DNA of 64,000 nucleotides from Chara braunii (GCA_003427395.1 BFEA01000027.1:2826469-2890468); one strand, 5' to 3'; numbered from the stretch's first letter, positions 1,467-63,557 are shown. The notes: generated from the letters alone by a model not told the origin. A program made the numbers and translations.

Positions 1467-1718
1467 GAAAAAACAAATAAAGAAATTGTTTGACGCCGTT
1501 GAAAACAGCGCCTGCTTTTCAGAGACTATAAGTCCCTGTTTTCTTCTTAATGCGCCATCTGGCGCTGTTCGTTTTTTTTCTTACTTATTATTCTTTTTTT
1601 TAATAAAAGAATGTCATTGGCATAATCCAATGGCCACAGTAGTCTGTACCAACCCTTGCTGGCACCTTCCCCCTTCCTTTCGATATGGGAGCTGAGTTCA
1701 ATTCCCGTCGGGGAATCG

Positions 1719-1780
1719 AAAAAATTTGAGTCATTTCTCGATTTATGCGTGTCATACTTGTGCAGGGGCCATACTGTATC
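1719..1780 (-). pseudogene. U6: U6 snRNA 3'-half fragment
   Basis: Reverse complement reads ATGGCCCCTGCACAAGTATGACACGCATAAATCGAGAAATGACTCAAATTTTTT, matching the plant U6 ISL and 3' end. Confidence 0.85.
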
Positions 1781-2727
1781 CGCGTTGTCGTAGCAAACAC
1801 CCCTACAAGGGTATTTCCTGTCCTTTTTAAAGGTCGCACTGAGTGCATCCTTGATTTGAAATGCGCTGATGAAGTAAATCCCGTCAGGGCGCTTATCTCG
1901 GCAGCCTCGCTCTTGGCAAGACTCCGAGTCAAATACGACCGAATTTGAGAGTATGTGGGGCATGCATTATTGTGTTGCACTGCGAAGTGACCGTTAGTCC
2001 TCGGCGGTATCAGGGCGGCCGAAGACATCAAAGTCATAGGATCCGGTTACCCCCTTTGTAGTTTTCAAATTGGTTATATTTTTATTTTATTTTATAAAAA
2101 TTAACTTCACTCCACGAGCCGGCTCAACCTTTCACGGGTACGTCACAAAGAAGATGAAGACGCTGCCTTGAGCACACGCAGAAAAAATGTGTTTGGCGAT
2201 GCATGGAAGGGCGCGGCGTTGGCAAACCTGGTATGGGGGGGAAGTCGAAAGCTTGACAGAACATGTCGAACGCTCGACGACCAGCCTTCCAGGTAGCCAC
2301 GATCCTAGGCGCGAGTGGTGTCTCGGCGTCTTCTGACGGCCAAAAGGTTGGCCGGTAGGCCAGATCGGAGACCTAGTTTGTGCAGGCGGGACCAATTACG
2401 GTCCCGTGAACTATTTATATGCGAGTTCGCGCCTACCTAGTTCAGACGTGGGCTTCGCCCTAACGGTTACGATATGGGACTTTCAAGCGGTAAGTTTGGG
2501 GTTCGAGGACAGCAAGCGACGATCAAGCAAAGGAGCGCGATCGGCAGAGACTGAGGGGTTGAGGGTCTTAAGTGACTAACCCCCTTCGTTTTGTCGGACG
2601 GGCCCAAAGCTGGGTTCGACTGGCAAGACCAAGAGGGCGTCGACAGATCCTCGTCCTCTTCAATTCTATTATTTTTAATTTTATTTTGTTGATTTATTTT
2701 TATTTTTATTTTTATTTTCCCCCGTTT

Positions 2728-3264
2728 TTCCGTCCATTGACCAGGTCGGAAACTGGCTCCGGGACCGACGGCGAGGAAGTATCGCGAGGAGGGATGAAAA
2801 TAACTTATAAAAAATAAAGTCGAAAGGGTGTTTAAAATTATCGAGCGAGGAGTGGATGGAAGAAGTCGTGTACCCCCACCTCCACGGGTGCGGACGGCGA
2901 TTGCGTCACCACCCTCCTTGATGGGTGTGGAGTGCATGCCGACGGGGGCTGCAGTGGCCGACATTGTGGTTGCGAACAATTGAACCCCCCCCACACGGAT
3001 AACAGTCACGGCAGTCGAGAGCCCTGAGCACCCGCCTCTTTTTGCGGGCCCGTGCGGGTTCCTGCATGTTCGGGATGCTGATGAGATTCCTCTATCCTCC
3101 CCGTCTTCAAAGCGCAGACCAACGGGGACAACGTGCAGGTGTGCCTAAGGGTGCAAATCCCTCGAAGCAGCGGGATCCTGAGTGGCGGGGATCTCCTGTA
3201 AGTGCACCATCCACCAACCATGAATCGTTGTGAGGAGTGCGAGTGTGAACAGGCCTGTGGGACC
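2728..3264 (+). pseudogene. Diverged 25S/28S rRNA-derived segment inside the LTR (region flanking and including D2, into domain II)
   Basis: Collinear matches to plant 25S: TTCCGTCCA; GCGAGGAAGTATCGCGAGGAGGGATGAAAA...TTAAAATTATCG...GGATGG (25S GCGAACAAGTACCGCGAGGGAAAGATGAAAA...TTGAAATTGTCG...GGATGG); CCCGTCTTCAAAG..GACCAA (25S CCCGTCTTGAAACACGGACCAA); GTGCACC...CGAGTGTGAACAGGCCTGTGGGACC (25S CGAGTGTGAGCATGCCTGTCGGGACC). Confidence 0.8.
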
Positions 3265-3720
3265 TGCATCCGTGGGCCAAGTACAACCGGTACCCCCGCA
3301 GGCTGTTGAAAAACAGGCCTGTGGGACCAGCACCCGTAGGTCAAGTTCAGTCGGTAACCCCGCAGGCTGTTGAAAAACAGGTCTGTGGGACCAGCACCTG
3401 TAGGTCAAGTTTAACTGGTACACCTGCAGGCTGTTGAAAAACAGGTCTGTGGGACCAGCACCCGTAGGTGAAGTTCGGTTGGTACAGCAGCAGGCTGTTG
3501 AAAAGCAGGCCTGTGGGACCAGCACCCGTAGGTCAAGTTCAGTTGCTACACCTGCAGGCTGTTGAAAAACAGGCCTGTGGGACCAGCACCCGTGGGCATA
3601 GCTCAGCTGGTACACCCACGAACAGTTGAAAAGAGGTATGTGGGAGCACAGCCACTGGGCCTAGCGCAGGTTGGTACCTCCGCGGACTGTTGGAAAACAA
3701 TCCTGTGGGATGAGCACCTA
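3249..3720 (+). repeat. 64-bp tandem repeat in the LTR (~7 units)
   Basis: Unit CAGGCCTGTGGGACCAGCACCCGTAGGTCAAGTTCAG...GCAGGCTGTTGAAAAA at 3314, 3378 and 3442. Also present at ~29415-29820. Confidence 0.93.
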
Positions 3721-3974
3721 AGCAAACCCAGTTAGCATACCTAGGAACTGTTGAAAATACAGACCTGTGTTCGAATCCAGATGACGGGGTGAGATGGGTA
3801 AAGCTTGTAAGACTAACCATTTCTGAATTACCCGGGGCTGGTCAACTAAGTGAAAAATAAAAGTAAAAAAAAAGTGTTGGACAGTGTCAGGGAGAGACAC
3901 AGCCAGAATGACACTATGGCAAAGGCACGCCAGGATCCGACATAGAGATCGTTATTGAACCTCAACACAAGGGT

Positions 3975-5022
3975 TGGAGACGAGGTCTTTCAGACTGATC
4001 CGGTCGCCTTGCTCGTATTGCCTAAGACATTGAACTGGGGCTGGAAATGAGGTCCTCCAGACTGATCCGGTCGCCTTGCTGTTTTGCCTAAGACATTGAA
4101 CNNNNNNNNNNNNNNNNNNNNNNNNNNNNNNNNNNNNNNNNNNNNNNNNNNNNNNNNNNNNNNNNNNNNNNNNNNNNNNNNNNNNNNNNNNNNNNNNNNN
4201 NNNNNNNNNNNNNNNNNNNNNNNNNNNNNNNNNNNNNNNNNNNNNNNNNNNNNNNNNNNNNNNNNNNNNNNNNNNNNNNNNNNNNNNNNNNNNNNNNNNN
4301 NNNNNNNNNNNNNNNNNNNNNNNNNNNNNNNNNNNNNNNNNNNNNNNNNNNNNNNNNNNNNNNNNNNNNNNNNNNNNNNNNNNNNNNNNNNNNNNNNNNN
4401 NNNNNNNNNNNNNNNNNNNNNNNNNNNNNNNNNNNNNNNNNNNNNNNNNNNNNNNNNNNNNAGGTTCTTCAGACTGGTCCGGTCGCCTTACTGTTTTGCC
4501 TAAGACATTGAACTAGGGCTGGAAATGAGGTCCTCCAGACTGATCCGGTCGCCTTGTTGTTTTGCCAAAGACATTGAACTGGGGCTGAAATTGAGGTCCT
4601 CCAGACTGATCCGGTCGCCTTGCTCGTATTGCCTAAGACATTGAACTGGGGCTGGAAATGAGGTCCTCCTGACAGATCCGGTCACCTTGCTGTTTTGCCT
4701 AAGACATTGAACTGGGGCTGGAAATGAGGTCCTCCAGACTGATCCGGTCACCTTGCTGTTTTGCCTAAGACATTGAACTGGGGCTGGAAATGAGGTCCTC
4801 CAGACTGATCCGGTCGCCTTGCTCGCATTGCCTAAGACATTGAACTGGGGCTGGAGACGAGGTCTTTAAGACTGATCCGTTCGCCTTGCTCGTATTGCGT
4901 AAGACATTGAACTGGGGCTGGAGACGAGGTCTTTCAGACTGATCCCGTCGCCTTGCTCGTATTGCCTAAGACATTGAACTGGGGTTTGAAATGAGGTTCT
5001 CAGACTTATCCGGTCGCCTTGC
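3975..5022 (+). repeat. 66-67-bp tandem repeat in the LTR (spans a gap)
   Basis: Unit AGACTGATCCGGTCGCCTTGCTSKTWTTGCCTAAGACATTGAACTGGGGCTGGAAATGAGGTCCTCC. Also present at ~30080-31120. Confidence 0.93.
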
Positions 5023-7411
5023 TAAGTCAATCGATTTTTGCTTGCTGAAAAAGGGTTGACTTTTCTCCTTGTGAGAATAGTCCAGGCTAGTGTATTGGTG
5101 ATTGCATGGGGTTTGACTGAGAACAACCTGGAAAGTAAAAATTAACTAAATAAGATACAGGACTCATGTTTTTGTGATAAGGACAAACGAAAGATGAAAA
5201 GTTTGGGTAAACAAATCCTTGTTTTGAATTAGTTGAATGTGTTATTGACTTGACATACCTGTTGGCAATGCCTTGTCTTTTGCTCAATGCTATGCTTGTC
5301 TTCTGCGTTATAGGGTAGTCTGTTAGTGTTCGCCTTATGCTTGAGCGATAGGCAGGTAGATGTTCACTTTTATGTTCGCATTTGTCTTTTTTCATGTATG
5401 TTTGTTTTGATAGGACTTCGNCTAGCCTTTGAATTAGTATAAATTCTGGGAGCCTCCTTTCCNAGGGGAAATGCTGCCNAAATTTCTGTTGAATCATCAA
5501 AGTTAGCCAAGGTTTTGNGATGTCAGCTAGGATATGGTATAGTTTAGTCTTTGGGGACAGTTGAAATTTTGGAAGTCTTCCTTTCTAAAGGAAGTGCTGC
5601 TGAAATTTCTACTGAAACCAAAAAGTTAGTTTAATTTCAGATGATTTTCATAGTCACGAGTTTTTCTTTTTAGATTTGGTATAGTAAATATTCTTCGAGC
5701 ACACTTCCCTAAAAGAAGTGCTGCAGAAATTTTCAGGATTTTTATATCGTTACCGGACGCTGCTGCTAAGTAAGCTTAGAGTGTGTTACGGAGTTGAACT
5801 CCGTTAACTCGACAGGCGATGCCTGCCTTGATTATTGTGGCGCAGGTCATTGCTACCTGCGAGAGTTTCTTCGAAGTCTTGAGCTTCATCAACTTCTGCT
5901 ATCACCTGATAGCACGTCGGTTTGCGACTCAACTCCTACCCACTGTGATACCCACGCCCAGATGTCTGTGACCCTGTAGGCGAAAGGCATTTCCGTATGA
6001 AATAAAACCTATCCTTGGAACCTCTCTTGAATGGCCATGCAAAAGCTGTGTGAATCGGGATAGGCGGATATGCCTTTGTTGAATGGGGTCGGAAACGGGC
6101 GTGTGGGACATGAGCCTGGGAGCAAAGGAGTTGACCACGTGTGGCATTTTGGATGTGAGTCTTCATTGGGTTTCATGTGTGTGCATGTATGTATGGGAGC
6201 GAGTACTCGCTCCTGGATTTGAGAGTGATATGAATGAATGAGTGCAGGGTGTGAGTGACAAGGTTCAACTATGGCTATGAGAATGACTCTCGTTGATTTC
6301 CCTCGCCATTTTCTTTCTCTTATTTTACTCCTGCCGTGTGCATCTAGCAAACAAGCAGGAGTAGCCGAGCGCAAGGTTTAGCGCTCGACCTTAGATCGGA
6401 CCGAGACTTAGCTTGGGTACGGCGAATTGCTCGCCAACCCGTGAGTACTCGTATTTTCCTTGCGCATGGGAAGGACGAGCGTACCCCGTCTCAAAAGGGG
6501 TCTTGCTTTTAAGATTATTAAATGGACGTTGGTCCTGACCCTGGAATTCGAGGTCTTTGTCCAAGACGTCCCAGACTCCGATCCAGCACAAAAAGGTTTC
6601 CCCCTTGAGGCGGACCTGCGCCCCTTGCTTATCCTCACCCACTGCCTAAAAAACACGGGTGACGCAAGGGCCGAACGACTTATCCTTCAGATGTGCAATA
6701 TCGTGAAGGAGAAACCCTTCACGATATTTCGCTTTCGACACTTGAGTGTCGTACGCAACCCCGAAACCCATGGGAGGTTGAACGGATGTGGGTAACACAT
6801 GAAGCGTCGCCGTGATAGTAGATTAAGTGAGAACACATGACTGAACGTTATGGTTCCCATGGCAGTGACATTCTTTTCATGTAACTATGCGCATACCTCG
6901 CTCAGACACATTGGCAGTTCTGAGTTATGGGTCAGGACGTATGAAAAAGGGACTAGGCTAATTTGCTTGTATGGGTTACGTTGCTTTATCGTGTATCGCG
7001 TGGTTGATTTAGGATGTCCTAGTCGACCGACGCTGAATCGCACGTGGGAGATCAGCGCCCCAGCGTGATGGTTCGTGTACAGGTCCGAGCTAGGCGTGGA
7101 CCGTGCGTACCCCCTATGCTACAGCATACGAGAAACACCCTCGACTGGGCCACCTCCGTGATTGCAAGTAAAAGTTTTCGTGTGTGGTTCAGTAGCTCGG
7201 CGAGGATACGCCCACCCAAGGGATGGTGACAGCTTCCGCAGGTGGAGGTAAGTTGTACCTCGCGAGACCCTTTCCTGTCGTAGGGACAACTGGCGCATTC
7301 GGCCGGAGCGGCTCTGCCGCTTCCCTTTCCATGAAGCGACTTGCGAATACTGCCAATCCTGCGTGACGAGGCCGGGAAGGTTCCCCCAACGGGGACCGTG
7401 CGCACGACAGG

Positions 7412-7431
7412 TGGCGCCGTTGTCGGGGATC
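7412..7431 (+). promoter_or_regulatory. Primer binding site, tRNA-Asp
   Basis: TGGCGCCGTTGTCGGGGATC, 2 nt after the LTR end. Complementary to the plant tRNA-Asp 3' end with one G-U-type mismatch. Confidence 0.88.
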
Positions 7432-7851: not shown

Positions 7852-10800
7852 ATGGCGGGCGATGAACTCAATCAGGCCGATGGCGCGGGCCAGCGGTCGG
7901 TTACGTTCGGTCAACTGGTTGCTCTACTGGATGGGCGCGCGGTGACGCGATCCAACATCCCTAAGGTTCCAATCTTCCACTTCAAAGGAGATAAGGTGTT
8001 AGAGTGGCTTGAGTTGCTCGAGCAAATTACTGACGAGATGACGGAAGAAGAAAAATTTCGTCAAATCTCTAAGTACGTCTGGTGGGAGATGCGGCCGGAA
8101 GTTATGCGAGTAGCAACTGAGGCCGCATGAAATTGGGAGAACTTTGAGGCAGAAATGCAGAGGCGGTATCAGTTGTGAGATAACCTCCTTACGATGAAGG
8201 ACTTGGAAAGGCTACAGAGGTCTGATTTCACGACAGTGGGTGCCTTCGCGACGACTTTCGAGAAGATGGCGAAGAAGGTTTCAGGGTTGGCCGAGGAGTC
8301 CCAATGTGCCATCTTCCTAAGCAACTTCACGGAATGCGAGAGTGTTTCCCTAACCAGAAGAGGGGCCATAGGGAGGAAGTTGACTTGGGAGACGGTGAAG
8401 CAAAGCTTGGCAGATGGGGAGTTGGACCAGGTATACTAGTTTCAGATAAAACAACAACGGCATAAGCGAAAGGCCCGAGTTGTTACTGAAGGAGCAGGTA
8501 TCAACCTTCAACAACTTATTGCGGATGGAATAGCCAAGTACCAAGCCGACCAACAGAAGGCGGCAGGGAAACAGGTTTTGATAGTGACTCAGCCTCAGGC
8601 AAAAGCTGCGAAAAAGGTGGTGGAGCAGGTGGAAGATGATGATGACGATGAGGAAAAAGAACCAGTGAAGCTGACAAAAAGTCAGAGAAAGACGAGGAAC
8701 CAGGCCTTAGGTGGTCAAGGTTCGGGGAAGAATACAGAAGTACAAGTCGTCGCGCCAGCCCAAGTAAATGCCAATCAGGCAAGCACGAGTGCGTCACCAC
8801 CACAGGGACCAGCGCCGGTTGGACCTTGGCCAGGGACCATTCCTCCTGTTTGGTCGGGGTATAGTCCATATGGCCCATGGCTGTTTTACAACCAAGCCGG
8901 GCCGCCTGTGGGAGGGCCGACTATGCATGCTGCAGGAGTATACCCCGATGCGCCGGCTCAAGGAGTGAATCAGCAAGGGGGGGGCCAACAGCAGCAGCAA
9001 GCACCCCCGCCCCAAGTCAACCAACCCGGTCAAGCAGCGGGTCAAGGACAAGGTCAGAACCAGGGAGGTAACGGGCAGAGCAATCAGGGCCGAGGCAATG
9101 GAGGCCGCGGATAGGGTAACAGTAATGGTGGACAAGGCGGTCAAGGGGGCGGACGTGGAGTCAATTGGAATGGGCAAGGCGGAAATGATAGGCCAAGGTT
9201 CGATTGGAGAAATGTCATTCGCCATCATTGCGCACTAAAAGGGCATAGCTTCAGGTTTTGCCAAATTCGGAAAGTAGATGAGGGAAATGGCCTTATCTCG
9301 ACGAACATGGACGGAGATGTCTATGATATGCATGGGAAATATATTGACCCTAACATTGCAGGTGGTATGCGCAAGGAGGCGCTTCGTCGAGCCGAACTAG
9401 GTCCGCCACCACTGACCATGTTCCGACTCTGGCAAGAGGAAAATGTCAGGTCAACGATAAAAGTGGAGGAACTGGCCAATAATGAGTCCGAAGAGGACAT
9501 CAGGAGGGAAGAGTCAGTCGTGATAGAAGAGGAGGAGGAAGAAGAATCGTATTGCCAAGGAAGGACCATAGATACCATGGAGCGAATGGAAGACCTCGTG
9601 GAGAAGATGCAGAGGTTGAATTTGAAAATGAGGTCCATTTGCGACGAGGTGGCGAAACCAATGGTTTACTTACTAGGCTCAGAAATAGGGCCATCGAGTG
9701 TCAAACTGGCTCGTCAGACCTTGGGATCAACCCCGGGATCAGGCATTACATTCCGACCTCCTCGAGGGCAACCCACATTCCCGCAAGCAGTATGCACGAG
9801 AAGTAAGAAAGGAAATCCCAGTAGCAGTCAGGAACCTCCAAGCGAAAGTCAACCTCGTGAGAAGGAGTCAGTTATCAATGTGGGGGATAAAGGCAAAGAG
9901 GATGAGGAAGATGAGCGGCTAAGGAAGGAAGAGGAAGAACAAGCTGCTCAACGTGCAAAGAAGAGGAAGCCGGAAGATAGGTCAGAAAGAGCAGCAAAAG
10001 GAGAAGGCTCGCGAAAACAAAAATATGGAGTACCATTGGAAGATGGCCTGGATTTTGAAGCCTTGGTTGATAGGCTTCTGGAAGGGCATAATGACCTGCT
10101 TAACTTAAAGGATATCCTCGCCTCTGCGCCTAAGCTTAGGGAAGGATTCAAAACACGACTCTCTTGTCGAAGGGTGGTGAGCGTGCGACTAGGAGATCTC
10201 ATCCCTGCCGAGGCTCATTGGGCGGTTTCTGGGACGGAAATGGATTGGAAATCGGTCGGGACTGGGAGTGTGAACCTGAGTATAAAGGGTAAGCCGTGTA
10301 GCGGAATGCTAGATACAGGAGCGGAGATGAATATCATCAAGGAATCTGACGCACTCCGCTTGGGGATGGACATCGATCGAATGGACTCAGGATTCCTCTA
10401 TGACGCAAGTGGGAGAACTCCTTTTACTGGGACGGCATCGAATGTGGTGATTGAAATCGGGAAAGTGAAGGTGCGGTCCTGCTTCTTCGTTATGCCCGAT
10501 TTGGACCATCCTCTCCTGCTGGGAAGGTCATTCCTTTGCCGCACTGAATCAATGATACTTAACAAGTATGACGACACAATGTATGTCAACCTAAGTGATC
10601 CAGTTTGCGGCAACTACGAGATTATCACCTGTCACAATACAGGACCTCGTAGCTTGAGGAATAGGCCGAACCCAGGTTCCTATACCTTTGAGGAATCTGA
10701 AGGGGAGAGGAGGAGATAAATGGGTGAAGACGAAGAGGAATGTGAGCCTACTGACGAGATGTGCTTAAGCCTAACCAATATCAACGATGCTATGGAGATA

Positions 10801-11013
10801 GTGTCGTCATATGGGATGGCGGATCCCATTGCTGTAGAGCCTTTGAGAGAAAGAATAGTGGAAGATTCCGGCGAGGGAGAAGTGGAGCTCGTATATCGAT
10901 TACCGGCAAGGACAAGTGAGTCGGGGGTACCTCAGAGTCGTGCTGCAAGCCAGCCTTTGATACGATTAGGGGTGGGCTTAAGCAGGGTTCCAAAAGAAGG
11001 TACAAACGCGTGA
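7852..11013 (+). pseudogene. gag: gag-protease (single frame, several in-frame stops)
   Basis: ORF fragments from 7837 to 11013 share one frame. Capsid-like N-terminus, Q/G-rich linker, decayed CCHC knuckle (~9220-9262, RHHCALKGHSFRFC) and aspartic protease motif LDTGA (~10310). Confidence 0.9.
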
Positions 11014-22844: not shown

Positions 22845-25655
22845 CTGGCTTTTTTTTTCGTTGTTGATTCGCTTACCTGCTAGTGTGAGACTGGACTACC
22901 GCTAGCGGAGGTGCTAGGTGCGAGCGCCAGCAGATCGGCGCCAGCAAGCAGGATTATCGCGAGGTGGATGAACCCAGGCAGGCGCCTGCGCCAAGTGCAT
23001 GCGCAGAGAGAGAGAGGAAGAGCTGACGGGCGGACCACTGCAGGGTGAAGTCGGGCCAGGCGAGGCGCCGAGTACGTGTCAGGCAGCGCCAGGCAGTTTT
23101 GGGCAAGGAGAGTGTGATGGGCGCTGAGGCGGCAGGCAGCAGGTAGCGAGCACGAAAGCGGGGGAGTGACGGGGAGTTGCGGAAGGGCCAGGTAGTAGGC
23201 GGGGCAGTCAAGGAGAAGGATGGGCTGAACCTGGGCGGTCCTACGTGCCAGGTATGTGCAAGGGTAGAGGAGAACGTCGCGGGGGCAAGCGCGAGTCATG
23301 GCGAACGAAGGAATGATCGGGAGAAAACTGAGAAAATCGTAGCCCGCCCGTTCTTCGATGGCATCGGGGGGAGAAAAAGGCGATTTGGGGGTTCTAGTCT
23401 AGGGCGAATCGATTGGCGAAGGCGGAATCAGAGGTAAGTTAGTAAAATTAGACTTAGTAGAGAAATGAGTTGCGCGGGCTATGGCGGAGACAGATACAAG
23501 AAGGGGTAAAAGTTTATGTATCTCGGCCATTTCTTGGCCGATTTCGTTGAACGAAGGCTCTAAATGGGGGTTTTGGGGCGTCGCGAGTTGACTGGCGGCG
23601 TTAGATTGGGCGATAGAGTAGTGGGTTGGGCGCTACGATGGTGAAAGACTGCGGGGGGGGTAAGGAGGAAAGTGATTGAACTTGGACGGGTTTCAGCGCA
23701 AGGTGCATGTGTAGAAGTGGGGAGGTAGATCATTGATCTTTCCCGTTTCTTGACGAAAACGGGCAGAAGAAGGCTTGGATCCAGAGTTTTCGAGGCGGGC
23801 AATCCGGATTCCGAAGTCAGACTTGGTAATGGGTTGGTAGTTTAGGAGGTTAGTAAGAAAGTTAGTGGGCGGGCTATGATGGGAGCGGGAGCGAAGGTGT
23901 AAGGAGAGAGGTATGGTTCGTTCGACTGAGGATGGAAATCGAACGAGCCATGGAGTTAAGCGGGGGTTTTGCAAGGCTACGAAGTGAGAGGTGGGGATAG
24001 ATTTAAGAGAAGGATAGTAGATTTGGAGTAAAAAGGGTGAGCGAACCTAGGCTGCAGGGTGTGCCAGGTGCAATCAGTAAGGAAAGGAGCGAAAGGGGGC
24101 AAAGGAGTCAGAGTGACCAGAGTGGAAGAGTGAGGAGATCGAAAGTGACGAAGAGGAAAAGCGAAGGAAAAGAAATGGAAGCCAGAGCACGGGATGAAGT
24201 TAAGAGGGGGGGGGGATGTATCTCACCGAGTTCTAGTGGAAGATTCATTGCAGTTTTGCATTTTTGGCCCATCCTATCGAAGAAAGTAGCTTCCGCCAGT
24301 TTGTGCGAGTACAATCAGACTGGTTGTGCGGGACGAGCCAAAAGCTAACTACGAAGCCACCCTGTGCCCTGATCAGGCTGGCGTGCGGATCCAGGCTCGT
24401 GCGACTTTGCCTTTCCTATCGATGGAGTGACTGGCCAATGATCACTGGCAGGTTGGAGGTCCTCCCGTTATTGAACTGTGGGGGATACCGGGGAGAGCGT
24501 CGTCTTGCTCAGAGAAGACCAGCTGCGAAATTGTTGTTGAAGCGGGGATGGGAAACGCTACAGGCGGGATAAGCCAGACGGACTGTGGGCTATGGAACTG
24601 CCAGACTGTGGACTGTGGACTACAAAACTGTGAACTGTGAACTGGTTGCCGACTGTCATGATAGAGTGCGCGCGGACTGTCGTTGTTGCAGTTGGTTGCT
24701 GGGTTACGTAGCCCTGCATAGACTACTGTTGCAGGTCCATCGCAAGTTGTGCACGGACTGCCACTGCTGAAAACCACGACTTTTGCTGTTGGACTGCAGC
24801 TATTGCTGCTGGTTAAGGCTATGTGTGACGATATCTGTCGCTGGGCTGCTGTTGTTACAGCTGGCTGTTGCCATATGTCGCTGCGTTTGTTGCAGAATTA
24901 CTGTTGTTGCCTACCTGGCCACTCTCGTATATGGTTGTTGCGCTGAGGGACTGCGTATGAACTGCTGCTATGATTAAGGACCATTACACGCTATTAAAAC
25001 AGCCGCGAATCGGGCGAGGCTTGAAGAGGTGGCCGGACTGGACAAGGAGGGAAGCTAGTACTACGATTTAAAAAGGGTCAGTAGAGGGTTTGACTTCAAC
25101 ATTTTGAACCAGAACTTGGTCAGACTGATACTAATTGGCTGCCATTGCGGGCCCCTCAGGTGTCTAGGCATCAAGGCCCTCTCATGTGGGTCTGAGTGCA
25201 CCATTCTTGGATCTGAGAGTCTCTACCTTCTATTTCTATCCCTTTCTTACTCTAAGTCTAGTCTATTGGTTCTGAGAGGAAGGCGACAGGCGGGATTGCA
25301 ACCCGTAGGTCCGCATCAAGACTCTGTGGGGAGTCCACCCATCGATTGCGGGAGCTCTCCCAGAACCTAGGCGAGGTTCTGGAGGCAGGGAATCATCAGG
25401 TATACCATCTCCATTTGTACAACCTACTATTACCCATGTTTGCCTATCTCCCTTTAGTAGGATTGCAGTATGCATGTGTTGTCCCTATGGTTTTTGCTTT
25501 CTCTTCATGACTTTAATCAGATTGAATGAAGAGAATGTGTGAGAGTGAAACTTAAGTTTCATTTTTGTTTTGACTGAAAGTAGACTAAGGATGAACTGGG
25601 GGAAGGTGGGAGGAAGGCAGTTTTGCATGCGTTTGGAAGGGTCAACCAAAGCCTG

Positions 25656-26215
25656 AGCATTGTTTCTACTGTGAATGGCTCGGGGCTATGTTTTATTTGG
25701 CTGTTTTTTGAAGGACCAGGCATTGTTTCTACTGTGAATGGTCTTAGTTGCTAGGGAGGATTTTTGGTCTAAGGTTGAGCATTGTTTCCATGGTGAATGG
25801 TTTAGCCTGAAAACCACGCACATAATTTAAACTAAGTATAAAGGAAAGTATTTTATGTATGTTTGCATGTGAACTGGCAGTTGAGCATCGTTTCTACTGT
25901 GAATGACCCAGTGTTAAGCCATATCATTAAGAAGAGAAAAAGGAAAATACAAAGTATAAATGGAAATAATTTGGGCAAGCTGAACATTGTTTCTACTGTG
26001 AATGGTTCAGTCCCCTGCCGATATTTGCCTTTTCTTTTAAAAACAAAGTCATAGAAATACTAAATCCTTGGATATTAAACAGCTTAGGGCGACTAGGCAT
26101 TATTTCCATGGCGAATGGCCTAGTCATCTGCCCAAAAGAAGAGAAAAGTAGTTTTGCAACCTGTTCGTGTATATCATAAAGACAAGCTGAACATGGTTTC
26201 CATGGCGAATGGTCC
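25656..26215 (+). repeat. Spaced repeats of GCATTGTTTCTACTGTGAATGG in the solo LTR
   Basis: About 7 copies with variable spacers of roughly 40-100 bp. Confidence 0.8.
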
Positions 26216-26534
26216 AGCTCTATGTCTTCTGTAAGATGGGTATAAGGATTCAAGAACTTGAAGATTCCTTAACTATATATATGGAATGAACTTGGGATGG
26301 TGAGAGTACTTACATTTGTGGTTTGATTTGCATGTGACTGGATAGGATGACTAGTTTGTTTGGGTTTCCGTTTTATAGGTAATTGCTTTAGTTGCTCGCC
26401 ACGTGCTAGAGTTTTAGGAGTTAGTGTCAATTCCTGCATTTTCTGTAATAATTTTTTTTTTACTTAGGTCATTTCCTGCATTTTCTGAGATCTTTTCTTA
26501 TATTTGGCTTTCTATAAATCTTGGCAAGCTACTT

Positions 26535-27245
26535 TTCCTACGGGAAGCGCTACCGAAATTTCTACAAATCCAAGAAGTTAGTCAACTTTTGACTTGTCAG
26601 AGTTCAACTTGTTTTTTCCATATACCTGGCTTAGTTAAATCTGGGAAGTCTCATTTTCTAAAGGGAGTGCTGCCCAAATTTTTATTAATTCAGGGAGTTA
26701 GACAAAAATTGAACTTTGGGAAGTCAAAGTTACTTTCAAAATATGAACTTAGCCTTGTATAAATTTTGGAATAACACTTTTCTAGAGGGAGCGCTGCCAA
26801 AATTAAGGAGTTAGTTAAATTCAGTCTAAAGTTGAGCTCGAGCTGTTGTTCGAGTTCATATCTGACTTAATATAAATCTGGGAAGTCTCCCTTTCTAAAG
26901 GGAGTGCTGCCCAAATTTCTACTAATTTAGAGAGTTGTACAGAATTTGACTTTCCAAAGTTAGAGATTATTTTTGCTTTTATANNNNNNNNNNNNNNNNN
27001 NNNNNNNNNNNNNNNNNNNNNNNNNNNNNNNNNNNNNNNNNNNNNNNNNNNNNNNNNNNNNNNNNNNNNNNNNNNNNNNNNNCTGGGAAGTCACCCTTTC
27101 TAAAGGGAGTGCTGCCCAAATTTTTACTAATCCAGAGAGTTAGACAGAATTTGACTTTCCAGAGTTAGAGATTATTTTTGCGTTTATATTTTAGCTTATA
27201 TAAATTATGGAAAGATACTTTTCTTACGGGAAACGCTGCCGAAAT
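26535..27245 (+). repeat. ~120-bp degenerate tandem repeat with core TTTCTAAAGGGAGTGCTGCCCAAATTT
   Basis: At least 6 cores. The related core AAGGAAGTGCTGCTGAAATTT occurs in the outer LTR (5460-5730). Confidence 0.75.
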
Positions 27246-29062
27246 TTTCTTAGTTTAGAGGAGATAGACTATAATTTGACAGGTGGCGATTCAGGTGACC
27301 CGCCCAGAATAGAGGAGTTTCCGCAGGTGGTCTACCTTTAGCTTAAAACATTGGCTTAAAAGTAGACTTAAGTTTAGCTTATAAGGAGATTTTGAGTAAG
27401 GATGTATTATGGAGTTGTATTCTCCATACACTTATGATCTTAGCTTGGGGATTGGTCTGCCGTGTGTTACAGGTCCTTTTGATCATTAGATCCAAGTTCA
27501 GGGCTAGATCCAGCTTGATCCCTTGAGGATCACTTTCTGTTATCACTGATAACAGATCGGTTGCCGATTCGTCGGCTTACGACTCAATTTCAACTCACCC
27601 TCCACACTCAACCTAAAAGGCTTTAGCCCTGGTGATTTCGTTGTTTTATTAAGGTTTCACCCGGACTTTTATTGAATGGTCATTTCACAAAGGTACTGAG
27701 TATTTAATTAAGGTTGGTTGGACAGAAGGTTTGGGGTTTGCATGGCTAAAGCGAGGGGTATGAGTGTCGAAGGTGGTTGGGGTTAACTCCGTATAGTGTG
27801 TGGGCTGTTGATTTGGTTCGTTGATGTGATTGCAGGTATGTGATGTGAATCAGATTCTGGATTTGGTTGCCTACGATCACATATATACGTATTGTTGTGA
27901 GAGACCCCAGTGAGAGTGTGAGAAGTGATCATTACATACTTAACCCTTATATATGTATACATGGGTATACTCGGGATGAATGTTTGCATGGGTTGAAGAC
28001 CCCCCCTTCTAAAATCCTACTCAGAAGCTGAGGCTGAGAAGCTTAGGGGAGACCTCTCCTTCTATTTTTTTGTTCTTACTTTTTGATGATTTTTTTTAGT
28101 CGGACATTTGGTCCTAGGCCGGGATTCGAGGTCCTTGTCTAGGACACCCCAAGCCCTAGGCTCTGCAGGGGAGGGGGTTTCCCTCTCGCTGAGCCTATTT
28201 GATTTACCTACCGAGACACTCAGGCCGAGAGCCGGAGGTGCCGCGGCGGCTGCACGGCTATTCCTTCAGCCGTGCAATGTCGTGAAGGGTTAGGCCCTCA
28301 CGACACTTCGAGTCTGACACTTGAGTGTCATAAGCGGTACTCGGATCCACGAGGGACCGCTTGATTATGGGTACTACATAGTACGCCATCATTGCGACTA
28401 CTTGCGTACGCTGCATTGCGAGTCGATATGAGTAGGCCCTGCGTCCGCGCGGTTTTATCCTAAGTCTCGCGCGCGACGCCTATTCGATTTCGCGTCGGAA
28501 AGCTACGGGACGGCTACCTAGGGGCTAGGAGCGTTGTCGCGTTGTTTATGTTGTGTCGTTTTGTACGCATGCGTGTGTATGTTTTATTTTTGTGTTCGTA
28601 AAGTGGTCTGCGCGTGGTGTGTGGGATGCGTCATAGTCGACCGACGATGGGCCGCGCTTCGGACTTCAGCCCCCCAAGATATCGGTTCACGTGCGGGTCC
28701 GATAGAGGCGTATTACCGCGTGTACCCCCTCTGCTACAGCGAACAAGAAACGCCCTCGGCTGGTCTACCTCTGCGATTGCAACTGATTAGCTTTCGTACT
28801 GTGGACTAGTAGCTCGGCAGGGATACGCCCACTGAAGGGAGGTGACAGTTCCCATAACGTGTAGGTAAGTCGTGCCTCGCGTAGGCCCTATCCTGTCGTA
28901 GGGACTCGCGAGAGGTATGGCTGGCGCACTCGGCCGGAGCGGCTTAAGGAAGCTCCACATGTATTGTCTGTGACGAAGGATTTAAACCAACTCCTGCGTG
29001 ACGCGGTCGGGAGGGTCCCTCGGTGCCCTGGTGCGGTGCCGGACCGGTGCACTCGACAACGG

Positions 29063-32000
29063 CGACTGCGTCACCACCCTCCTTGATGGGTGTGGAGTGC
29101 ATGCCGACGGGGGCTGCAGTGGCCGGCATTGCGGTTGCGAACAATTGAACCCCCCCCACACGGATAACAGTCACGGCAATCGAGAGCCATCAGCACCCGC
29201 CTCTTTTTGCGGGCCCGTTCGAGTTCCTGCATGTTCGAGATGCTGATGAGATTCCTTTATCCTCCCCGTCTTGAAAGCGTAGACCAACGGGGACAACGTG
29301 CAGGTGTGCCTAAGGGTGCAAAGCCCTCGAACTAGCGGGATCCTGAGTGGCGGGGATCTCTTGTAAGTGCACCATCCACCAACCACGAATTGTTGTGAGG
29401 AGTGCGAGTGTGAACAGGCCTGTGGGACCTGCATCCGTGGGCCAAGTTCAGCTGGTACACCCCGCAGGTTGTTGAAAAACATGCCTGTGGGACCTGCATC
29501 CGTGGGCCAAGTACAGACGGTACCCCCGCAGGCTGTTGAAAAACAGGCCTATGGGACCAGCACCCGTAGGTCAAGTTCAGTCGGTACCCCCGCAGGCTGT
29601 TGAAAAACAGGCCTGTGGGACCAGCACCCGTAGGTCAAGTTCAGCTGCTACACCCGCAGGCTGTTGAAAAGCAGGCCTGTGGGACCAGCACCCGTGGGCA
29701 TAGCTCAACTGGTACACCCACGAACATATGAAAAGAGGTCTATGGGAGCACAACCACTGGGCCTAGCGCAGATTGGTACCTCCGCGGACTGTTGGAAGAC
29801 AGTTATGTGGGATGAGCACCTAAGCAAGCCCAGTTAGCATACCCAGGAACTGTTGAAAATACAGACCTGTGTTCGAATCCAGATGATGGGGTGAGATGAG
29901 TAAAGCTTGTAAGACTAACCATTTCTGAATTACCCGGGGCCGGTCAGCTTAGTGAAAAAAAAAAAAAAAAAAAAAAAGTGTTGGACAGTGTCAGGGAGAG
30001 ACACAGCCAGAATGGCACTATGGCAAAGGCACGCCAGGATCTGACATACAGATCGTTCATTGAACCTCAACACAAGGGTTGGAGACGAAGTCTTTCAGAC
30101 TGATCCGGTCGCCTTGCTCGTATTGCCTAAGACATTGAATTGGGGCTGGAAATGAGGTCCTCCAGACTGATCCGGCTTCCTTGCTGTTTTGCCTAAGATA
30201 TTGAACTAGGGCTGGAAATGAGGTCCTCCAGACTGATCCGGTCGCCTTGCTGTTTTGCCTGAAACATTGAACTGGGGATGGAAATGAGGTCCTCCAGACT
30301 GATCCGGTCGCCTTGNNNNNNNNNNNNNNNNNNNNNNNNNNNNNNNNNNNNNNNNNNNNNNNNNNNNNNNNNNNNNNNNNNNNNNNNNNNNNNNNNNNNN
30401 NNNNNNNNNNNNNNNNNNNNNNNNNNNNNNNNNNNNNNNNNNNNNNNNNNNNNNNNNNNNNNNNNNNNNNNNNNNNNNNNNNNNNNNNNNNNNNNNNNNN
30501 NNNNNNNNNNNNNNNNNNNNNNNNNNNNNNNNNNNNNNNNGGTCCTCCAGACTGATCCGGTCGCGTTGCTGTTTTGCCTAAGACATTGAACTGGGGCTGG
30601 AGACGAGGTCCTTCAGACTGATCCGGTCGCCTTGCTGTTTTGCCTAAGACATTGAATTAGGGTTGGAAATTAGGTCCTCCAGACTGATCCAGACGCCTTG
30701 CTGTTTTGCCTAAGACATTGAACTGGGGCTGAAAATGAGGTCCTCCAGACTGATCCGGTCGCCTTGCTCGTATTGTCTAAGACATTAAATTGAGGCTAGA
30801 AATGGGGTCCTCCAGACTGATCCGGTCGCCTTGCTGTTTCGCCTAAGACATTGAACTGGGTAAGACATTGAACCAGGGTTGGAAATGAGGTCCTCCAGAC
30901 TGATCCGGTCGCCTTGCTTGTATTGCCTAAGACATTGAACTGGGGCTGGAGACGAGGTCCTTGAGACTGATCCGGTCGCCTTGCTCGGATTGCGTAAGAC
31001 ATTGAACTGGGGCTGGAGACGAGGTCTTTCAGACTCATCCGGTCGTCTTGCTCGTATCGCCTAAGACATTAAACTGGGTTTGGAAATGAGGTCCTTCAGA
31101 CTCATCCGGTAGCCTTGCTAAGTCAATCGATTTTTGCTTGCTGAAAAAGGGTTGACTTTTCTCCTTGTGAGAATAGTCCAGGCTAGTGTATTGGTGATTG
31201 CATGGGGTTTGACTGAGAACAACCTGGAAAGTAAAAATTAACTAAATAAGATACAGGACTCATGTTTTTGTGATAAGGACAAACGAAGGATGAAAACTTT
31301 GGGTAAACAAATCCTTGTTTTGAATTAGTTGAATGTGTTATTGACTTGACATACCTGTTGGCAATGCCTTGTCTTTTGCTCAATGCTATGCTTGTCTTCT
31401 GCGTTATAGGGTAGTCTGTTAGTGTTTGCCTTGTGCTTGAGCGATAGGCAGGTAGATGTTCACTTTTATGTTCGCATTTGTCTTTTTTCATGTATGTTTG
31501 TTTTGATAGGACTTCGACTAGCCTTTGAATTAGTATAAATTCTGGGAGCCTCCTTTCCNAGGGGAAATGCTGCCNAAATTTCTGTTGAATCATCAAAGTT
31601 AGCCAAGGTTTTGNGATGTCAGCTAGGATATGGTATAGTTTAGTCTTTGGGGACAGTTGAAATTTTGGAAGTCTTCCTTTCTAAAGGAAGTGCTGCTGAA
31701 ATTTCTACTGAAACCAAAAAGTTAGTTTAATTTCAGATGATTTTCATAGTCNCGAGTTTTTCTTTTTAGATTTGGTATAGTAAATATTCTTCGAGCACAC
31801 TTCCCTAAAAGAAGTGCTGCANAAATTTTCAGGATTTTTATATCGTTACCGGACGCTGCTGCTAAGTAAGCTTAGAGTGNGTTACGGAGTTGAACTCCGT
31901 TAACTCGACAGGCGATGCCTGCCTTGATTATTGTGGCGCAGGTCATTGCTACCTGCGAGAGTTTCTTCGAAGTCTTGAGCTTCATCAACTTCTGCTATCA

Positions 32001-33524
32001 CCTGATAGCACGTCGGTTTGCGACTCAACTCCTACCCACTGTGATACCCACGCCCAGATGTTTGTGACCCTGTAGGCGAAAGGAATTTCCGTATGAAAGA
32101 AAACCTATCCTTTGAACCTCTCTTGAATAGTCATGCAAAAGCTGTGTGAATCGGGATAGGCGGATATGCCTTTGTTGAATGGGGTCGGAAAGGGGCGTGT
32201 GGGACATGAGCCTGGGAGCAAAGGAGTTGACCACGTGTGGCATTTTGGATGTGAATCTTCATTGGGTTTCATGTGTGTGCAGGTATGTATGGGAGCGAGG
32301 ACTCGCTCCTAGATTTGAGAGTGATATGGATGAATGAGTGCAGGGTGTGAGTGACAAGGTTCAACTATGGCTGTGAGAATGACTCTCGCTGATTTCCCCC
32401 GAGACTCGCCATTTTCTTTCTCTTATTTTACTCTTGCCGTGTGCATCTAGCAAACAGGCAGGAGTAGCTGAGCGCAAGGTTTAGCGCTCGACCTTAGATC
32501 GGACCGAGACTTAGCTTGGGTACGACGAATTGCTCGCCAACCCATGAGTACTCGTATTTTCCTTCCGCAGGGGAAGGACGAGCGTACCCTGTCTCAAAAG
32601 GGGTCTTGCTTTTAAGATTAATAAATGGACGTTGGTCCTGAGCCTGGAATTCGAGGTCCTTGTCCAAGACGCCCCAGACTCCGATCCAGCACAAAAAGGT
32701 TTCCCCCTTGAGGCGGACTTGCGCCCCTTGCTTATCGTCACCCACTGCCTAAAAAACAGGGGTTCCGCAAGGGCCGAACGACTTATCCTTCAGAAGTGCA
32801 ATATCGTGAAGGAGAAACCCTTCACGATATTTCGCTTTCGACACTTGAGTATCGTACGCAACCCCGAAAACCATGGGAGGTTGAACGGATGTGGGTAACG
32901 CAAGAAGCGTCGCCATGATAGCAGATTAAGTGAGAACACATGACTGAACGTTATGGTTCCCATGGCAGTGGCATTCTTTTTATGTAACTATGTGCAGACT
33001 TCGCTCAGACACATTGGCAGTTCTGAGTTATGGGTCAGGACGTATGAAAAAGGGAGTAGGCTGATTTGTTTGTATGGGTTACGTTGTTTTATCGTGTATC
33101 GCGTGGTTATTTAGGATGTCCTAGTCGATCGACGCTGAATCGCACGTGGGAGATCAGCGCCCCAGCGTGACGGTTCGCGTACGGGTCGGAGCTAGGCATG
33201 GACCGCGCGTACCCCCTATGCTACAGCATACGAGAAATGCCCTCGGCTGGGCCACCTCCGTGATTGCAAGTAAAAACTTTCGCGTGTGGTTCAGTAGCTC
33301 GGCGGGGATACACCCACCCAAGGGATGGTGACAGCTCCCGCAGGTGGAGGTAAGTTGTACCTCGCGAGACCCTGTCCTGTCGTAGGGACTCGATGGAGGT
33401 ATAGCTGGCGCACTCGGTCGGAGCGGCTTCGCCGCTTCCCTTTCCATGAAGCGACTTGCGAATACTGCCAATCCTGCGTGACGCGGCCGGGAAGGTTCCC
33501 CCAGTGGGGACCGTGCGCACGACA
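29063..33524 (+). repeat. 3' LTR, second part
   Basis: Resumes collinearity with 2898-7409 and ends CACGACA. Confidence 0.93.
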
Positions 33525-42462: not shown

Positions 42463-42849
42463 GCCATACTCTTAACGGAATGAAACTATTTAACTAAACA
42501 AAAAAAATAGGAATGGAAGGGTCCCATTTGATCAAGCATCCCCCCCCCCCCCCCCCCCCCCCCCAACAAAGACCTTATTTAGTCATTTTTTCAGACCAAA
42601 GATGTTGAAGAGGGGAAAGAAAAACATAAAGTTCGGATTAGGTGAGGTTTTTTCACTCTTGTTGCATTGTTGGCACTGCTCCACTGTTGCATGTTAGTTT
42701 CTTCTACTGGTACTGTGGTACATGTTCTAGCCGACCTTGAGTGTGAGGGTGTTAAGTTGATTGATCTATAGGTCAGATAAGTAGGTCCAGGAAAGTGTTG
42801 GTCTCGGTGCCTTTTCTCCAGTAAGAGATGAAAGACCGACTCTACCTCT

Positions 42850-43625: not shown

Positions 43626-45889
43626 AAAAAAATCTCGAAATCCGTTATGATTTATTTAACAATATATTACGCCAAACGATTTGAGCGGAGTTCACACGGA
43701 GCATGGTCCCATTAGCAGGCGGATAGGAGTGCGGCCGATCCAGTGTGACACTGAGTGGCAGCGGCCTGACAGGTTCATTACGAATTTCTGGGGTGAGAAA
43801 ACAGGAGAAAGGCAAAAAAAAAGAAAAAAGAAACAGAGACCTCCCACCTGAAATCACGTCAGAGTGCTTCCCAGCCATCAGATCACAAATGATCTGATGC
43901 TGGTGCTTGCAACAACAGTAGAGAGTAACTGCCATATTTTCTAAACTCAACTTCTGTCAGCAGTGATCCTGACGCCCTCCATATACTCCGTGATTGAAGG
44001 AGGGCTCCACCCAGTGATCCTGACGCCCTCCATATACTCCGTGATTGAAGGAGGGCTCCACCCAATGAGATAATTGCACAACAGCAAGCAAAATACTGAA
44101 AACTTCTATCCAGTGGGCCTATGGCCGACCCCACTCTCTTTTGGGGTTGGCCATACCCCCAACGGATTGAAAAGATTTTGGCGGGAAGCTTCCTTTGCAC
44201 CAGCATGCTCAGTGTTAAGGAGAGGAGGAGGGGAACCAAGATCTCCTTACTGTCTCGGGTAATACATTTAAAGTACTGACCATGGGATCACGAGTACTGA
44301 CCATGGGATCACGAGTACTGCACGACCACACAAACTCTTTTCTATCCTATCCGGTTGCTAGTGGGACCATGCTCACGCTCGTATTTAATTGGAACCTCCT
44401 TTTTTTTTTTTTTTTTTTTTTTTTTAATCCACTCTTTTTTAAGATAAAAAAAAAACGCTTTTTTTCCCACTTTTTTTATGATTACAAAAAACAAAAAAAG
44501 CTCGGGTGAAGTAACTCTTTTATATATGCCTAAGAATTAGGAGCCCTCCAGGAATGCGCTCGAACGAATTATTTGATTTGGAATAAGTTTATTGAGCTTT
44601 ATTCTTTCTTTCTTTTTTGTTTTTTGTTTTTTCTTTTTCCCCAAAACACAGTCAAATTCATTATCTATGAATATTGAAAAGAGGCCAGGGACCGCACAAT
44701 TCAACCGGGATTTATGGCGCAGCAGCAGCAGCCGGTTTAGCTTACGAGTATCAATTTTTTGTTATCATGTTTTTCATTTCCCAGTTTTGCTGCTAAATTT
44801 TATGTTTCGCTGCTAAATGAACCAACGAGGGCTCTACTCGTTGTGAGTAAGAAAAACCACCACCACTCTAACCTGCCTAACTACCCACCTATTCCATCTG
44901 CTCTTAAGATTGAGCGTTATTCTTATTATTAGTTATTAAATTGTCTTTTTTTCTTTTTTTCTTTCAAAGATGACAGCAAAGTTAAGAGCAAACCCTCGAC
45001 TGACCGAAGTTCGAACTAATTTACTCTTGCAAGGGAAACATGAGTGAGAGCGATAGACACAAATCCAAATTGCAAAATCATGCTGTAGCCCAGATAGTTG
45101 TGTACCAAGCAAGCAGAATGCACAATGCACCGAGTTATCTATCAGCCAAATAAGAGCACAGCAATAAACTCAAATGTCAATGTGGACACTCTGTGTCTGC
45201 ACCAGCACAGTGTCCAAGGTCGCTCAAGTGTCCAAGATCACTCCACCAGCACAGTGTCCAAGGTCGCTCTTCTCTATTGGCGGTAGGCGCCGAGCCTATC
45301 TACTCAGCACCTATACTAGCCTACACTGTGTTCATGCAAAGAAATCACTTCTTTGCAGAATGATGTATGTGGTGACGATATCGCCAATGCAGACTGCCAG
45401 CATACGCCAGTATGCAGAATTGACAAAGATAGGCCTCTCGTAAATATTCTGGTCCTCCTTCACTTAGGGCGGGCACAAGTCTGTACGCGCCCTCAGCCGA
45501 GATGTGGGGTGAGCTCTAGCAGGGCCACTGCTGCGAAGATTTAGGCCCCCATGTAAATTCCGACAGCCCTTTAGCGTGATCACACTGGCCTGTATCCCAG
45601 GCCTTGGCACATATTGGCAGGCCCTGCCTTCACTTAGGGCGGTCAGGCAAGGCCTTTCCAGCACTGCCGAGGCCTCAAATTCTCGCACTCAATTGTAAGT
45701 ATGGTTAATTACGAGCCGTCCAGGTAATCCGTTCGAGCAAGTGTGATGGCCTAGAGATGTCATCGTGAAACTGACCAGCCCCAGGTAATACATACGGAGA
45801 ACTTGGTTTATCTATCATGGCTAGAAGTTATTTTGTCTTTTGTGCATGTGGTGAGTAGTGCAGTGTGGCTCACAGACCTAAGACTTCTG

Positions 45890-45960
45890 TTTTTTTTTTT
45901 TTTTTTGGCCATGCTAGTCTTCTCTGTATCGTTCCAATTTTAACAGATATCCCGAAGGAC
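45890..45960 (-). pseudogene. U6: 3'-truncated U6 snRNA retrocopy with poly(A) and TSD
   Basis: Reverse complement reads GTCCTTCGGGATATCTGTTAAAATTGGAACGATACAGAGAAGACTAGCATGGCC plus A17. 17-bp TSD ACAGACCTAAGACTTCT at 45872-45888 and 45961-45977. Confidence 0.95.
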
Positions 45961-62594: not shown

Positions 62595-62681
62595 GCGTGT
62601 CATCCTCGAAAGCGCAGGGGCCACGCTAATCTTGTCCAGGTTCTCAGTATCATTCCAGTTTCACCAGATGTCCCAAAGGCC
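62595..62681 (-). pseudogene. U6: Old degraded U6 snRNA retrocopy
   Basis: Plus strand GCGTGTCATCCT..GCGCAGGGGCCACGCTAATCTT..TCTCAGTATCATTCCA..GATGTCCC..AGG is antisense U6 with two small insertions. Flanked by TSD-like CAGCAT(AT)GCCGTTT. Confidence 0.8.
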
Positions 62682-63488
62682 CAGCATGCCGTTTTGATAG
62701 CACGCCAAACCCACATACCAAATGATTCCAACGAGTCAGTACAGGGATCAACGGCTGAAAGTGTCCTCGACCCCAAACCAAACGATTACGTCAAAAATTG
62801 TGTTCAGAGAAAAAAACAAACACAAGAAGTTTCGCATAGAATGGACTGTAAGGCAGAACAAAACAAAACAAAACAAAACAAAAAACTTTTGCCTAAACGT
62901 TTGTAAGCTTCGCCCCTCGCTTCCGGAAAAAGGGGAAAAAAAAGCCTAAACGTCGGGCAAAGCAGGACAAGGAAGGTATTGCAGTTGACGGGCGGTGGTT
63001 GAGCAAGCGATGGCAACCTGCAATCCATGCAAGAGCTCACGGGAGGCTAAACCTATGCCGTTCACTGCTCTTATTTCACGACGAGGGTATTTAGTGGACA
63101 CACGCAATATACGAACCAAACCTGAGCTCTCTTCCCGATCTTGCCGTCACAAAATGCTCTCTGGAAGCTAAAGTCTTTTTTTTTTCATACCAGAGTGCTT
63201 ACTCATGTCAAATTCTCCAAGGCGGTCCCCGCTTCACAAAATGGTCTTCAGTCGTCAATGTGAACAAAACATCAAAAGAGTGATTTCCCTCTTCGCGACG
63301 ATGGCGAGCCACGGTAGTTTTCAAGCACCTTCCTAGAGCTTTTCGTCTTCTTCTTCACAATTCATCGAAACGCAATGCACAAAAGAGTCAACTCCCAAAA
63401 AAAAAACAAAAAAAAAACTCCGAGAGTCTGAGGACTGACAAAAAAAATACAGCACAAACCAAAGACGGAGGTATTGCTGAGCTCAAAA

Positions 63489-63496
63489 CACACATA

Positions 63497-63557
<61 letters not shown>
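63489..63557. repeat. (CA)n microsatellite
   Basis: Direct reading. Similar runs at 47262-47368. Confidence 0.95.

Follow-up and report, generated by a model that had tools for sequence, protein, structure and literature searches.

Both LTRs of a giant Ty3/Gypsy retrotransposon, found in a 64,000-nucleotide stretch of DNA (the window, GCA_003427395.1 BFEA01000027.1:2826469-2890468) whose host is most likely the charophyte alga Chara braunii, contain about 540 bases of decayed large-subunit (LSU) rRNA sequence in sense orientation. The donor was the host lineage's own rDNA, and the capture is much older than the insertion that now carries it. The segment is probably a real, old capture that forms an inert, passive module of the LTR. 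We think it likely that it is a passenger, left from an old capture of LSU rRNA and U6 snRNA that has been decaying ever since and has been deleted to different extents in different LTR families.

A first-pass annotation of the window had recognised the LSU-like stretch and suggested that it might work as an rRNA mimic. Here, we describe the element and its host, the evidence for the rRNA origin and for the donor, the related LTRs of Chara, the age and constraint of the segment, and the ways in which it may have been acquired.

The element and its host

By self-comparison, ORFs and Pfam, the window holds a structurally complete Ty3/Gypsy element with giant LTRs (Table 1), family A in what follows. 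A 12.9 kb internal region with gag-pol lies between the LTRs, and the order of its domains (protease, RT, RNase H, integrase) bears out the earlier assignment to Gypsy. A purine-rich tract stands directly before position 20333, where the 3' LTR starts, as a polypurine tract does. The element is flanked by CGCGT and GCGCG, which have CGCG in common, offset by one base; the target duplication is not clean. The 5' and 3' LTRs are 95.6-96.8% identical when the nested insert that splits the 3' LTR is excluded.

The integrase ORF has 58 matches, 57 of them named, and all of these come from Chara braunii, with identities of up to 86%. These relatives make the charophyte the most likely host, rather than a land plant, and the 'plant' 25S rRNA named as donor in the first-pass annotation needs to be amended in the same sense. 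Related loci (L119, L120 and L122-L127) were fetched via the integrase relatives from the assembly GCA_003427395.1.

Table 1. Coordinates of the features in the window and content of the related Chara LTRs
Feature	Position	Strand	Basis and remarks
5' LTR, family A, 5.6 kb	1786-7409	+	TG...CA ends; direct repeat with 20333-21457 and 29059-33524 in self-blast
Module common to related LTR families, ends in T-rich run, directly 5' of LSU-derived segment	2414-2727	+	64% identity to nested LTR 21957-22258; also in L120, L122, L124, L126 and L127
LSU rRNA-derived segment, LSU positions ~297-818, sense	2728-3264	+	111 bits; start near 2728-2741 in multiple alignment
Conserved core 1, LSU domain I, positions ~333-430	2763-2859	+	73% identity, 59.7 bits alone
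D2 expansion-segment-like middle	2860-3069	+	Collinear inside long alignment; host rRNA reads align to its 3' part
Patch at least 85% identical to host genuine LSU rRNA/rDNA	3007-3107	+	RNA up to ~15,655x (run X6), DNA word depth up to 1e4-1e5
Conserved core 2, LSU positions ~620-818	3070-3264	+	69% identity, 89.7 bits alone
64-bp tandem array, 7.4 copies	3248-3718	+	Tandem Repeats Finder; unit starts with last ~17 nt of LSU-derived segment
Predicted primer-binding-site-like 17-mer, TGG-initiated, two bases past 5' LTR	7412-7428	+	Read from the sequence
Gag-protease, RT, RNase H and integrase ORFs, Ty3/Gypsy order	9307-14345	+	Pfam
3' LTR, left part, including LSU-derived 21288-21457	20333-21457	+	Self-blast; blastn against LSU
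Nested insert, read as solo LTR of sister family N, 7.6 kb	21458-29058	+	TG...CA ends, 4-bp duplication ACGG; splits 3' LTR
LSU-derived piece in N, LSU positions ~822-1035, sense	22562-22740	+	96.8 bits, 80% identity over 124 nt; no simulation above 38 bits
Full-length U6 snRNA copy, directly 3' of N's LSU piece	22745-22850	+	Rfam U6 84.6 bits, model positions 1-105; ends in T-run
3' LTR, right part, including LSU-derived 29059-29429	29059-33524	+	Self-blast; blastn against LSU
L122: module, then U6 alone			Few bases before U6 common with N
L126: module, then U6 alone			93% identical to N's U6
L123: LSU ~620-818-like piece, coordinates of A core 2			Borderline, 41 bits; no module detected
L120: module, then just the first ~40 nt of the LSU edge			
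L124 and L127: module, neither LSU nor U6 after it			

Across LTR families that have otherwise diverged, the ~300-nt module at 2414-2727 is better conserved than any other part of the 5' region, and the captured RNA pieces start after it; no Rfam family matched it. Downstream of the LSU-derived segment lies the 64-bp tandem array. By eye, the whole array unit had seemed LSU-derived; beyond its first ~17 nt the similarity is not significant. A second tandem array, of 66-67 bp, is found in both LTRs (3954-5045 and 30059-31140). At 4023-4101 within it, DNA contig depth reaches ~1.2e5-1.5e5 and both RNA strands are covered, and its unit may also be a high-copy satellite.

Similarity to LSU rRNA

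We searched the LTR by blastn (word size 7, +1/-1) against 118 eukaryotic rDNA loci taken from metagenome contigs; a search of this sensitivity, against host rDNA, had been proposed with the first-pass annotation. The loci were retrieved with a 24-mer of LSU domain I, and the six that were checked all proved to be LSU_rRNA_eukarya. Window positions 2763-3264 are collinear, in sense, with LSU model positions ~333-818; in an example alignment, to locus L041 at 696-1181, identity is 62% over 518 columns and the score is 111 bits. When the same stretch was simulated 200 times with a first-order Markov model, no score went above 38 bits, and with the segment reversed blastn gave zero matches to the 118 loci. 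The claim of about 500 bp of sense-oriented collinearity is thereby confirmed, as is a start near 2728, since a multiple alignment places the onset of similarity at 2728-2741.

The details of the earlier description fared less evenly. Two conserved cores, 2763-2859 and 3070-3264, are each significant by themselves, and to that extent the proposed set of cores stands; the D2-like stretch between them (2860-3069) is not significant against foreign LSUs in the blastn comparison with the 118 loci. A weaker match proposed at 3757-3843 has to be given up: its score of 25 bits is exceeded in the simulations, which go up to 35 bits, and the stretch is also unlike the LSU piece of the nested LTR. A possible 18S/5.8S/25S-5' order upstream of the segment was likewise set aside: blastn scores for 1957-2670 and 2400-2762 fall within those of the simulations, and Rfam has no match on 1957-2762.

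That the segment is present in both LTRs, and was copied as part of the element, is supported. The two parts of the 3' LTR match LSU in their own right (21301-21436 with 68 bits, 29227-29429 with 78 bits), and the LTRs differ from each other by ~4%.

Profile methods do not see the segment in LTR A. Rfam on the whole window gave no LSU match at the gathering threshold, the Rfam LSU_rRNA_eukarya covariance model gave no match on 2300-4100 at E <= 10, and nhmmer with a 67-sequence LSU profile missed LTR A and found the nested LTR piece alone. Since the Rfam LSU model gives just 17.6 bits (E = 0.17, model positions 822-948) to the 80%-identical nested piece, we take its blank on LTR A as a limit of sensitivity and not as a contradiction; these methods fail because the mismatches of a decayed copy at invariant columns count heavily against it. 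An Infernal search with this model had been put forward, beside blastn, as a test of the rRNA origin. It is too insensitive for that role, and its blank result would lead to a wrong rejection.

The donor

We aligned DNA contigs (two sets) and oligo-dT RNA reads (two runs), all with the same species label, to the region 1500-4101. A huge depth peak appears at 2979-3152, where DNA word depth reaches 1e4-1e5 and RNA depth rises to ~15,655x (run X6). Almost all reads in the peak have their first mate on the minus strand; calibrated by the genuine rRNA reads, a first mate on minus means RNA on plus. The reads are mostly 85-90% alike to the window, carry ~12 fixed differences from it, and have unaligned ends that run on into the canonical LSU motif after CCCGTCTT. 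Because of these fixed differences and loose ends, the peak reads are recognised as the host's genuine rRNA and rDNA.

The stretch at 3007-3107 is the 3' part of a lineage-specific D2 expansion segment. In that region, the motif CAACGTGCA is common to the LTR and the host read consensus and occurs in none of the 118 foreign LSU loci. The donor is the host lineage's own rDNA.

Between the patch and host rRNA, identity is 85-88%, and at flanking, universally conserved positions it is ~65-73%; in the adjacent conserved stretch it is ~65%, over 30 host bases visible in the read ends. The contrast may be a matter of sampling, as only stretches above the 85% threshold are visible, or it may reflect a later exchange with rRNA.

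The nested LTR and related LTRs of Chara

The insert that splits the 3' LTR reads as a solo LTR of a sister family, N. It has no ORF of at least 150 aa, and homology to LTR A, at ~62% identity, extends over its termini and its last kilobase. The two LTRs are collinear in their termini, in the conserved module (A 2414-2703, N 21957-22258) and in the RNA-derived region. In LSU coordinates, the N piece begins ~5-40 nt past the end of the A piece, and a complete U6 copy follows it.

Among the related loci, remnants of LSU and U6 come in several combinations (Table 1). The survey of presence and absence is incomplete because assembly gaps strike these very LTR regions: multi-kilobase runs of N fall exactly in the 5' parts of the giant LTRs at L119, L120, L122 and L123. 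Two loci of the same family as A, L119 and L125, were left out, their 5' LTRs lying in an assembly gap or being truncated.

About 7 kb upstream of another family A copy, L125 870-1178 is a decayed fragment that resembles the 3' end of SSU rRNA. It is 70-74% identical (E = 1e-49) to a stretch ~620-925 bases upstream of the LSU in several loci, a stretch that is taken as the SSU 3' end.

Age, constraint and expression

The LTR matches 35 of the 48 columns (73%) that are at least 95% invariant among 105 diverse eukaryotic LSUs. The mismatch at these columns is 27%, or 0.34 after Jukes-Cantor correction, against an LTR-LTR divergence of ~0.042, so the capture is roughly an order of magnitude older than this insertion. 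That divergence from rRNA far exceeds the divergence between the LTRs had already been noted and taken to mean old capture and long retention. The first part stands (~27% at universally invariant columns against ~4% between the LTRs), and the second reads better as slow decay. The LSU-derived part is 95.9% identical between the LTRs, the upstream flank 95.6% and the downstream flank 96.8%; such equality is uninformative on function because segment and flanks were copied at one insertion.

An RNAalifold consensus of the 105 LSUs had almost no consensus pairs, and invariant and variable columns were therefore compared instead. Core 1 retains 32 of 43 universally invariant columns; its identity is 74% at invariant, 69% at intermediate and 73% at variable columns. 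Positions that a ribosome would not tolerate being altered have changed as often as the others, a sign of decay without rRNA-like constraint. The fold of the segment is no more stable than that of shuffled sequences (z = -0.56), in a weak test in which a true LSU fragment reached just -1.37.

The two oligo-dT RNA runs have zero depth at 2718-2978 and almost none at 3153-3239. The proposed mapping of RNA-seq reads thus found no depth on the segment besides the cross-mapping of genuine rRNA. What RNA signal there is elsewhere in the 5' part of the LTR is low, runs antisense and stems from diverged copies. The contigs of two DNA samples cover the segment with variants of their own, which implies that other genomic copies carry it too. 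Their summed depth is ~115 on the segment and 350-2500 over other parts of the LTR, these depths not being copy numbers, and some contigs skip 2774-3010.

U6 copies elsewhere in the window

Three further U6-like stretches lie on the minus strand. At 45872-45977, a U6 copy cut after about nucleotide 54 (U6 part 45907-45960) is followed by an A-run and bounded by an 18-bp direct duplication (AGAAGTCTTAGGTCTGTG), features of LINE-type retroposition. A few bases upstream of the 5' LTR, 1720-1776 corresponds to the U6 3' half (Rfam 40.7 bits, just under threshold). DNA contig depth there is ~1.3e5 and the read ends are U6 3' ends followed by long A-runs, from which U6 retrocopies seem to be extremely abundant in the genome. 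A weaker, fourth U6-like stretch of the window, 62595-62679, is 70% identical to the U6 of the nested LTR. Weak matches at 42540-42573 and 63484-63540 were discarded as low-complexity runs.

Origin of the captured segment

We propose that host-lineage LSU ~297-1035, followed by full-length U6, was copied in sense into an ancestral giant Ty3/Gypsy LTR of Chara. The insertion point would have been in the 5' third of the LTR, just downstream of the module that is still conserved across families. The capture would have preceded the split of the families, and its most likely route is template switching of the reverse transcriptase onto co-packaged host RNAs; the particles of retroviruses are known to take up U6 and other non-coding RNAs of the host. 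The insert was then propagated with the rest of the LTR, which accounts for its presence in both LTRs, and has decayed without rRNA-like constraint, with descendant families losing different parts. Family A keeps LSU 297-818 and has grown the 64-bp tandem array from its 3' edge, and family N keeps LSU 822-1035 and U6. Others are left with U6 alone, LSU 620-818 alone or the 5' edge alone.

Template switching is suggested by an insert that is in sense, a U6 that is complete from nucleotide 1 to its T-run, and the way this U6 abuts an internal LSU breakpoint. One composite capture is suggested by the near-adjacency of the A and N pieces in LSU coordinates, by their common position downstream of one module, and by the leftovers in L120, L122, L123 and L126. 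The ~62% identity between the A and N LTRs is compatible with LSU pieces that are 20-27% away from rRNA. A single capture is the simplest reading; the A and N pieces do not overlap and cannot be aligned to each other, so it stands on adjacency and position in the LTR. One old capture followed by uniform neutral decay would not be expected to leave a patch of 85-88% identity beside flanks of 65-73%.

Acquisition at the DNA level is possible, although we regard it as unlikely. An element copy in or near rDNA, or an rDNA pseudogene or LINE-made LSU/U6 retrocopy landing in an LTR, would later have become the master copy. The ingredients are at hand: a LINE-type U6 retropseudogene with A-tail and 18-bp target duplication (45907-45960), U6-like DNA at very high depth, and the decayed SSU-like fragment near another copy. 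The cassette itself, however, has neither A-tail nor flanking duplication, its U6 is the 3' component, the reverse of the arrangement in classical LINE U6 chimeras, and a signal of 18S or 5.8S upstream is absent. It also lies inside the LTR rather than at its edge, where read-through would have put it.

That the segment is a functional module appears doubtful. LSU-derived RNA would be kept for nucleolar or ribosomal-protein binding, for silencing evasion, or through copy-choice refreshing as in Cassandra 5S. That remnants persist in no fewer than two or three LTR families, which share just ~62% identity, would fit such a role, and so would the closeness of the patch at 3007-3107 to the fast-evolving D2 of the host (at least 85%), which exceeds that of the universal cores to any LSU (~73%). 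Against it, families keep different, non-overlapping parts of LSU or none, invariant rRNA positions are not preferentially retained, and RNA depth over the segment is zero outside the cross-mapping patch. There is no covariance-model match and no excess fold stability, the true LSU control also being weak, and DNA contig depth at 2805-2978 is below that of the rest of the LTR. The rRNA mimic proposed in the first-pass annotation is not borne out by the retention of invariant positions, by segment-specific RNA depth or by what the families have in common.

The patch also brings in a more specific and likewise improbable scenario, in which Chara Gypsy families co-package rRNA and U6, and copy-choice refreshes the LTR segment patch by patch from the evolving rRNA of the host. 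If true, this would explain a D2 patch of at least 85% identity beside cores of ~73%. It would then be the LSU counterpart of the co-evolution of Cassandra with 5S and could bear on packaging, nucleolar targeting and silencing.

Chance similarity, an assembly chimera or rDNA contamination is barely credible. In its favour are the blanks of Rfam and nhmmer on LTR A and the many gaps of the assembly. Against it, the score exceeds all 200 simulations by far, the same decayed segment stands in both LTRs with ~4% differences and is covered, with sample-specific variants, by contigs of two independent DNA samples, and an identity of 62-73% rules out misassembled real rDNA.

Implications

If the route that we infer is right, the passenger segment is a naturally preserved trace of an LTR retrotransposon whose reverse transcriptase switched to non-coding RNAs of the host. 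The birth of a tandem array is visible at the edge of the captured piece. As covariance-model scans miss decayed captures, cases of this kind are probably under-reported. There are also practical consequences for work on Chara. The RNA-derived region of these LTRs is systematically under-assembled in the public Chara braunii assembly, and genuine rRNA cross-mapping on 2979-3152 will inflate estimates of family expression, rDNA copy number or FISH signal unless this stretch is masked.

Comparison with known systems

The giant plant Gypsy lineage Tat/Ogre is recognised by an intron that separates protease from RT, by an additional ORF and by its own RT/integrase phylogeny. The element described here, with LTRs of 5.6 kb, long ORFs on the 3' side and a gap that separates the protease ORF from the RT ORF, resembles it in size only. 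LTR retrotransposons and retroviruses transduce host RNA in sense, maize Bs1 being an example, and what they take up is mRNA fragments placed in the internal region. Here, by contrast, the transduced RNAs would be non-coding LSU rRNA and U6, and they are sited in the LTR.

Chimeras that arise when a LINE switches templates have U6 as their 5' partner, a poly(A) 3' end and target-site duplications around the whole. LTR N shares with them a full-length U6 fused to another cellular RNA, which suggests template jumping by reverse transcriptase. Unlike them, it has U6 as the 3' partner, ending in its own T-run with no A-tail seen, and the fusion is embedded in an LTR. The copy at 45907-45960, which is unrelated to the N cassette, does have the features of LINE chimeras.

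Cassandra is a short, non-autonomous TRIM, unlike our element with its 5.6 kb LTRs and gag-pol. Its 5S sequence keeps an internal Pol III promoter, is conserved and tracks the 5S of the host. The Chara element instead carries an internal LSU fragment (~297-818) with no known promoter, with 27% mismatch at invariant positions and with uneven retention, and as to a transcript of its own, of the Cassandra type, RNA depth at 2718-2978 is zero.

A 2024 review of rDNA borne by transposable elements lists 5S in Cassandra, Ajax and 5S SINEs, 28S in SINE28, and IGS repeats in Pokey (PMC10946416). It names no LTR element with LSU rDNA in its LTR, in agreement with the first-pass annotation, and our own literature search for such an element, and for Chara specifically, found none. 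Cassandra in plants and Ajax in nemerteans resemble the present case in having rRNA-gene sequence in both LTRs, spread by retrotransposition (PMC10946416). Mammalian SINE28, derived from 28S, likewise mobilises an LSU rRNA fragment within a retroelement (PMC10946416); it is a short, LINE-dependent, non-LTR element, whereas here the fragment is a passenger in a 5.6 kb LTR. To these systems the window adds a case of LSU rRNA in an LTR, from a streptophyte alga, joined to U6 in sister families.
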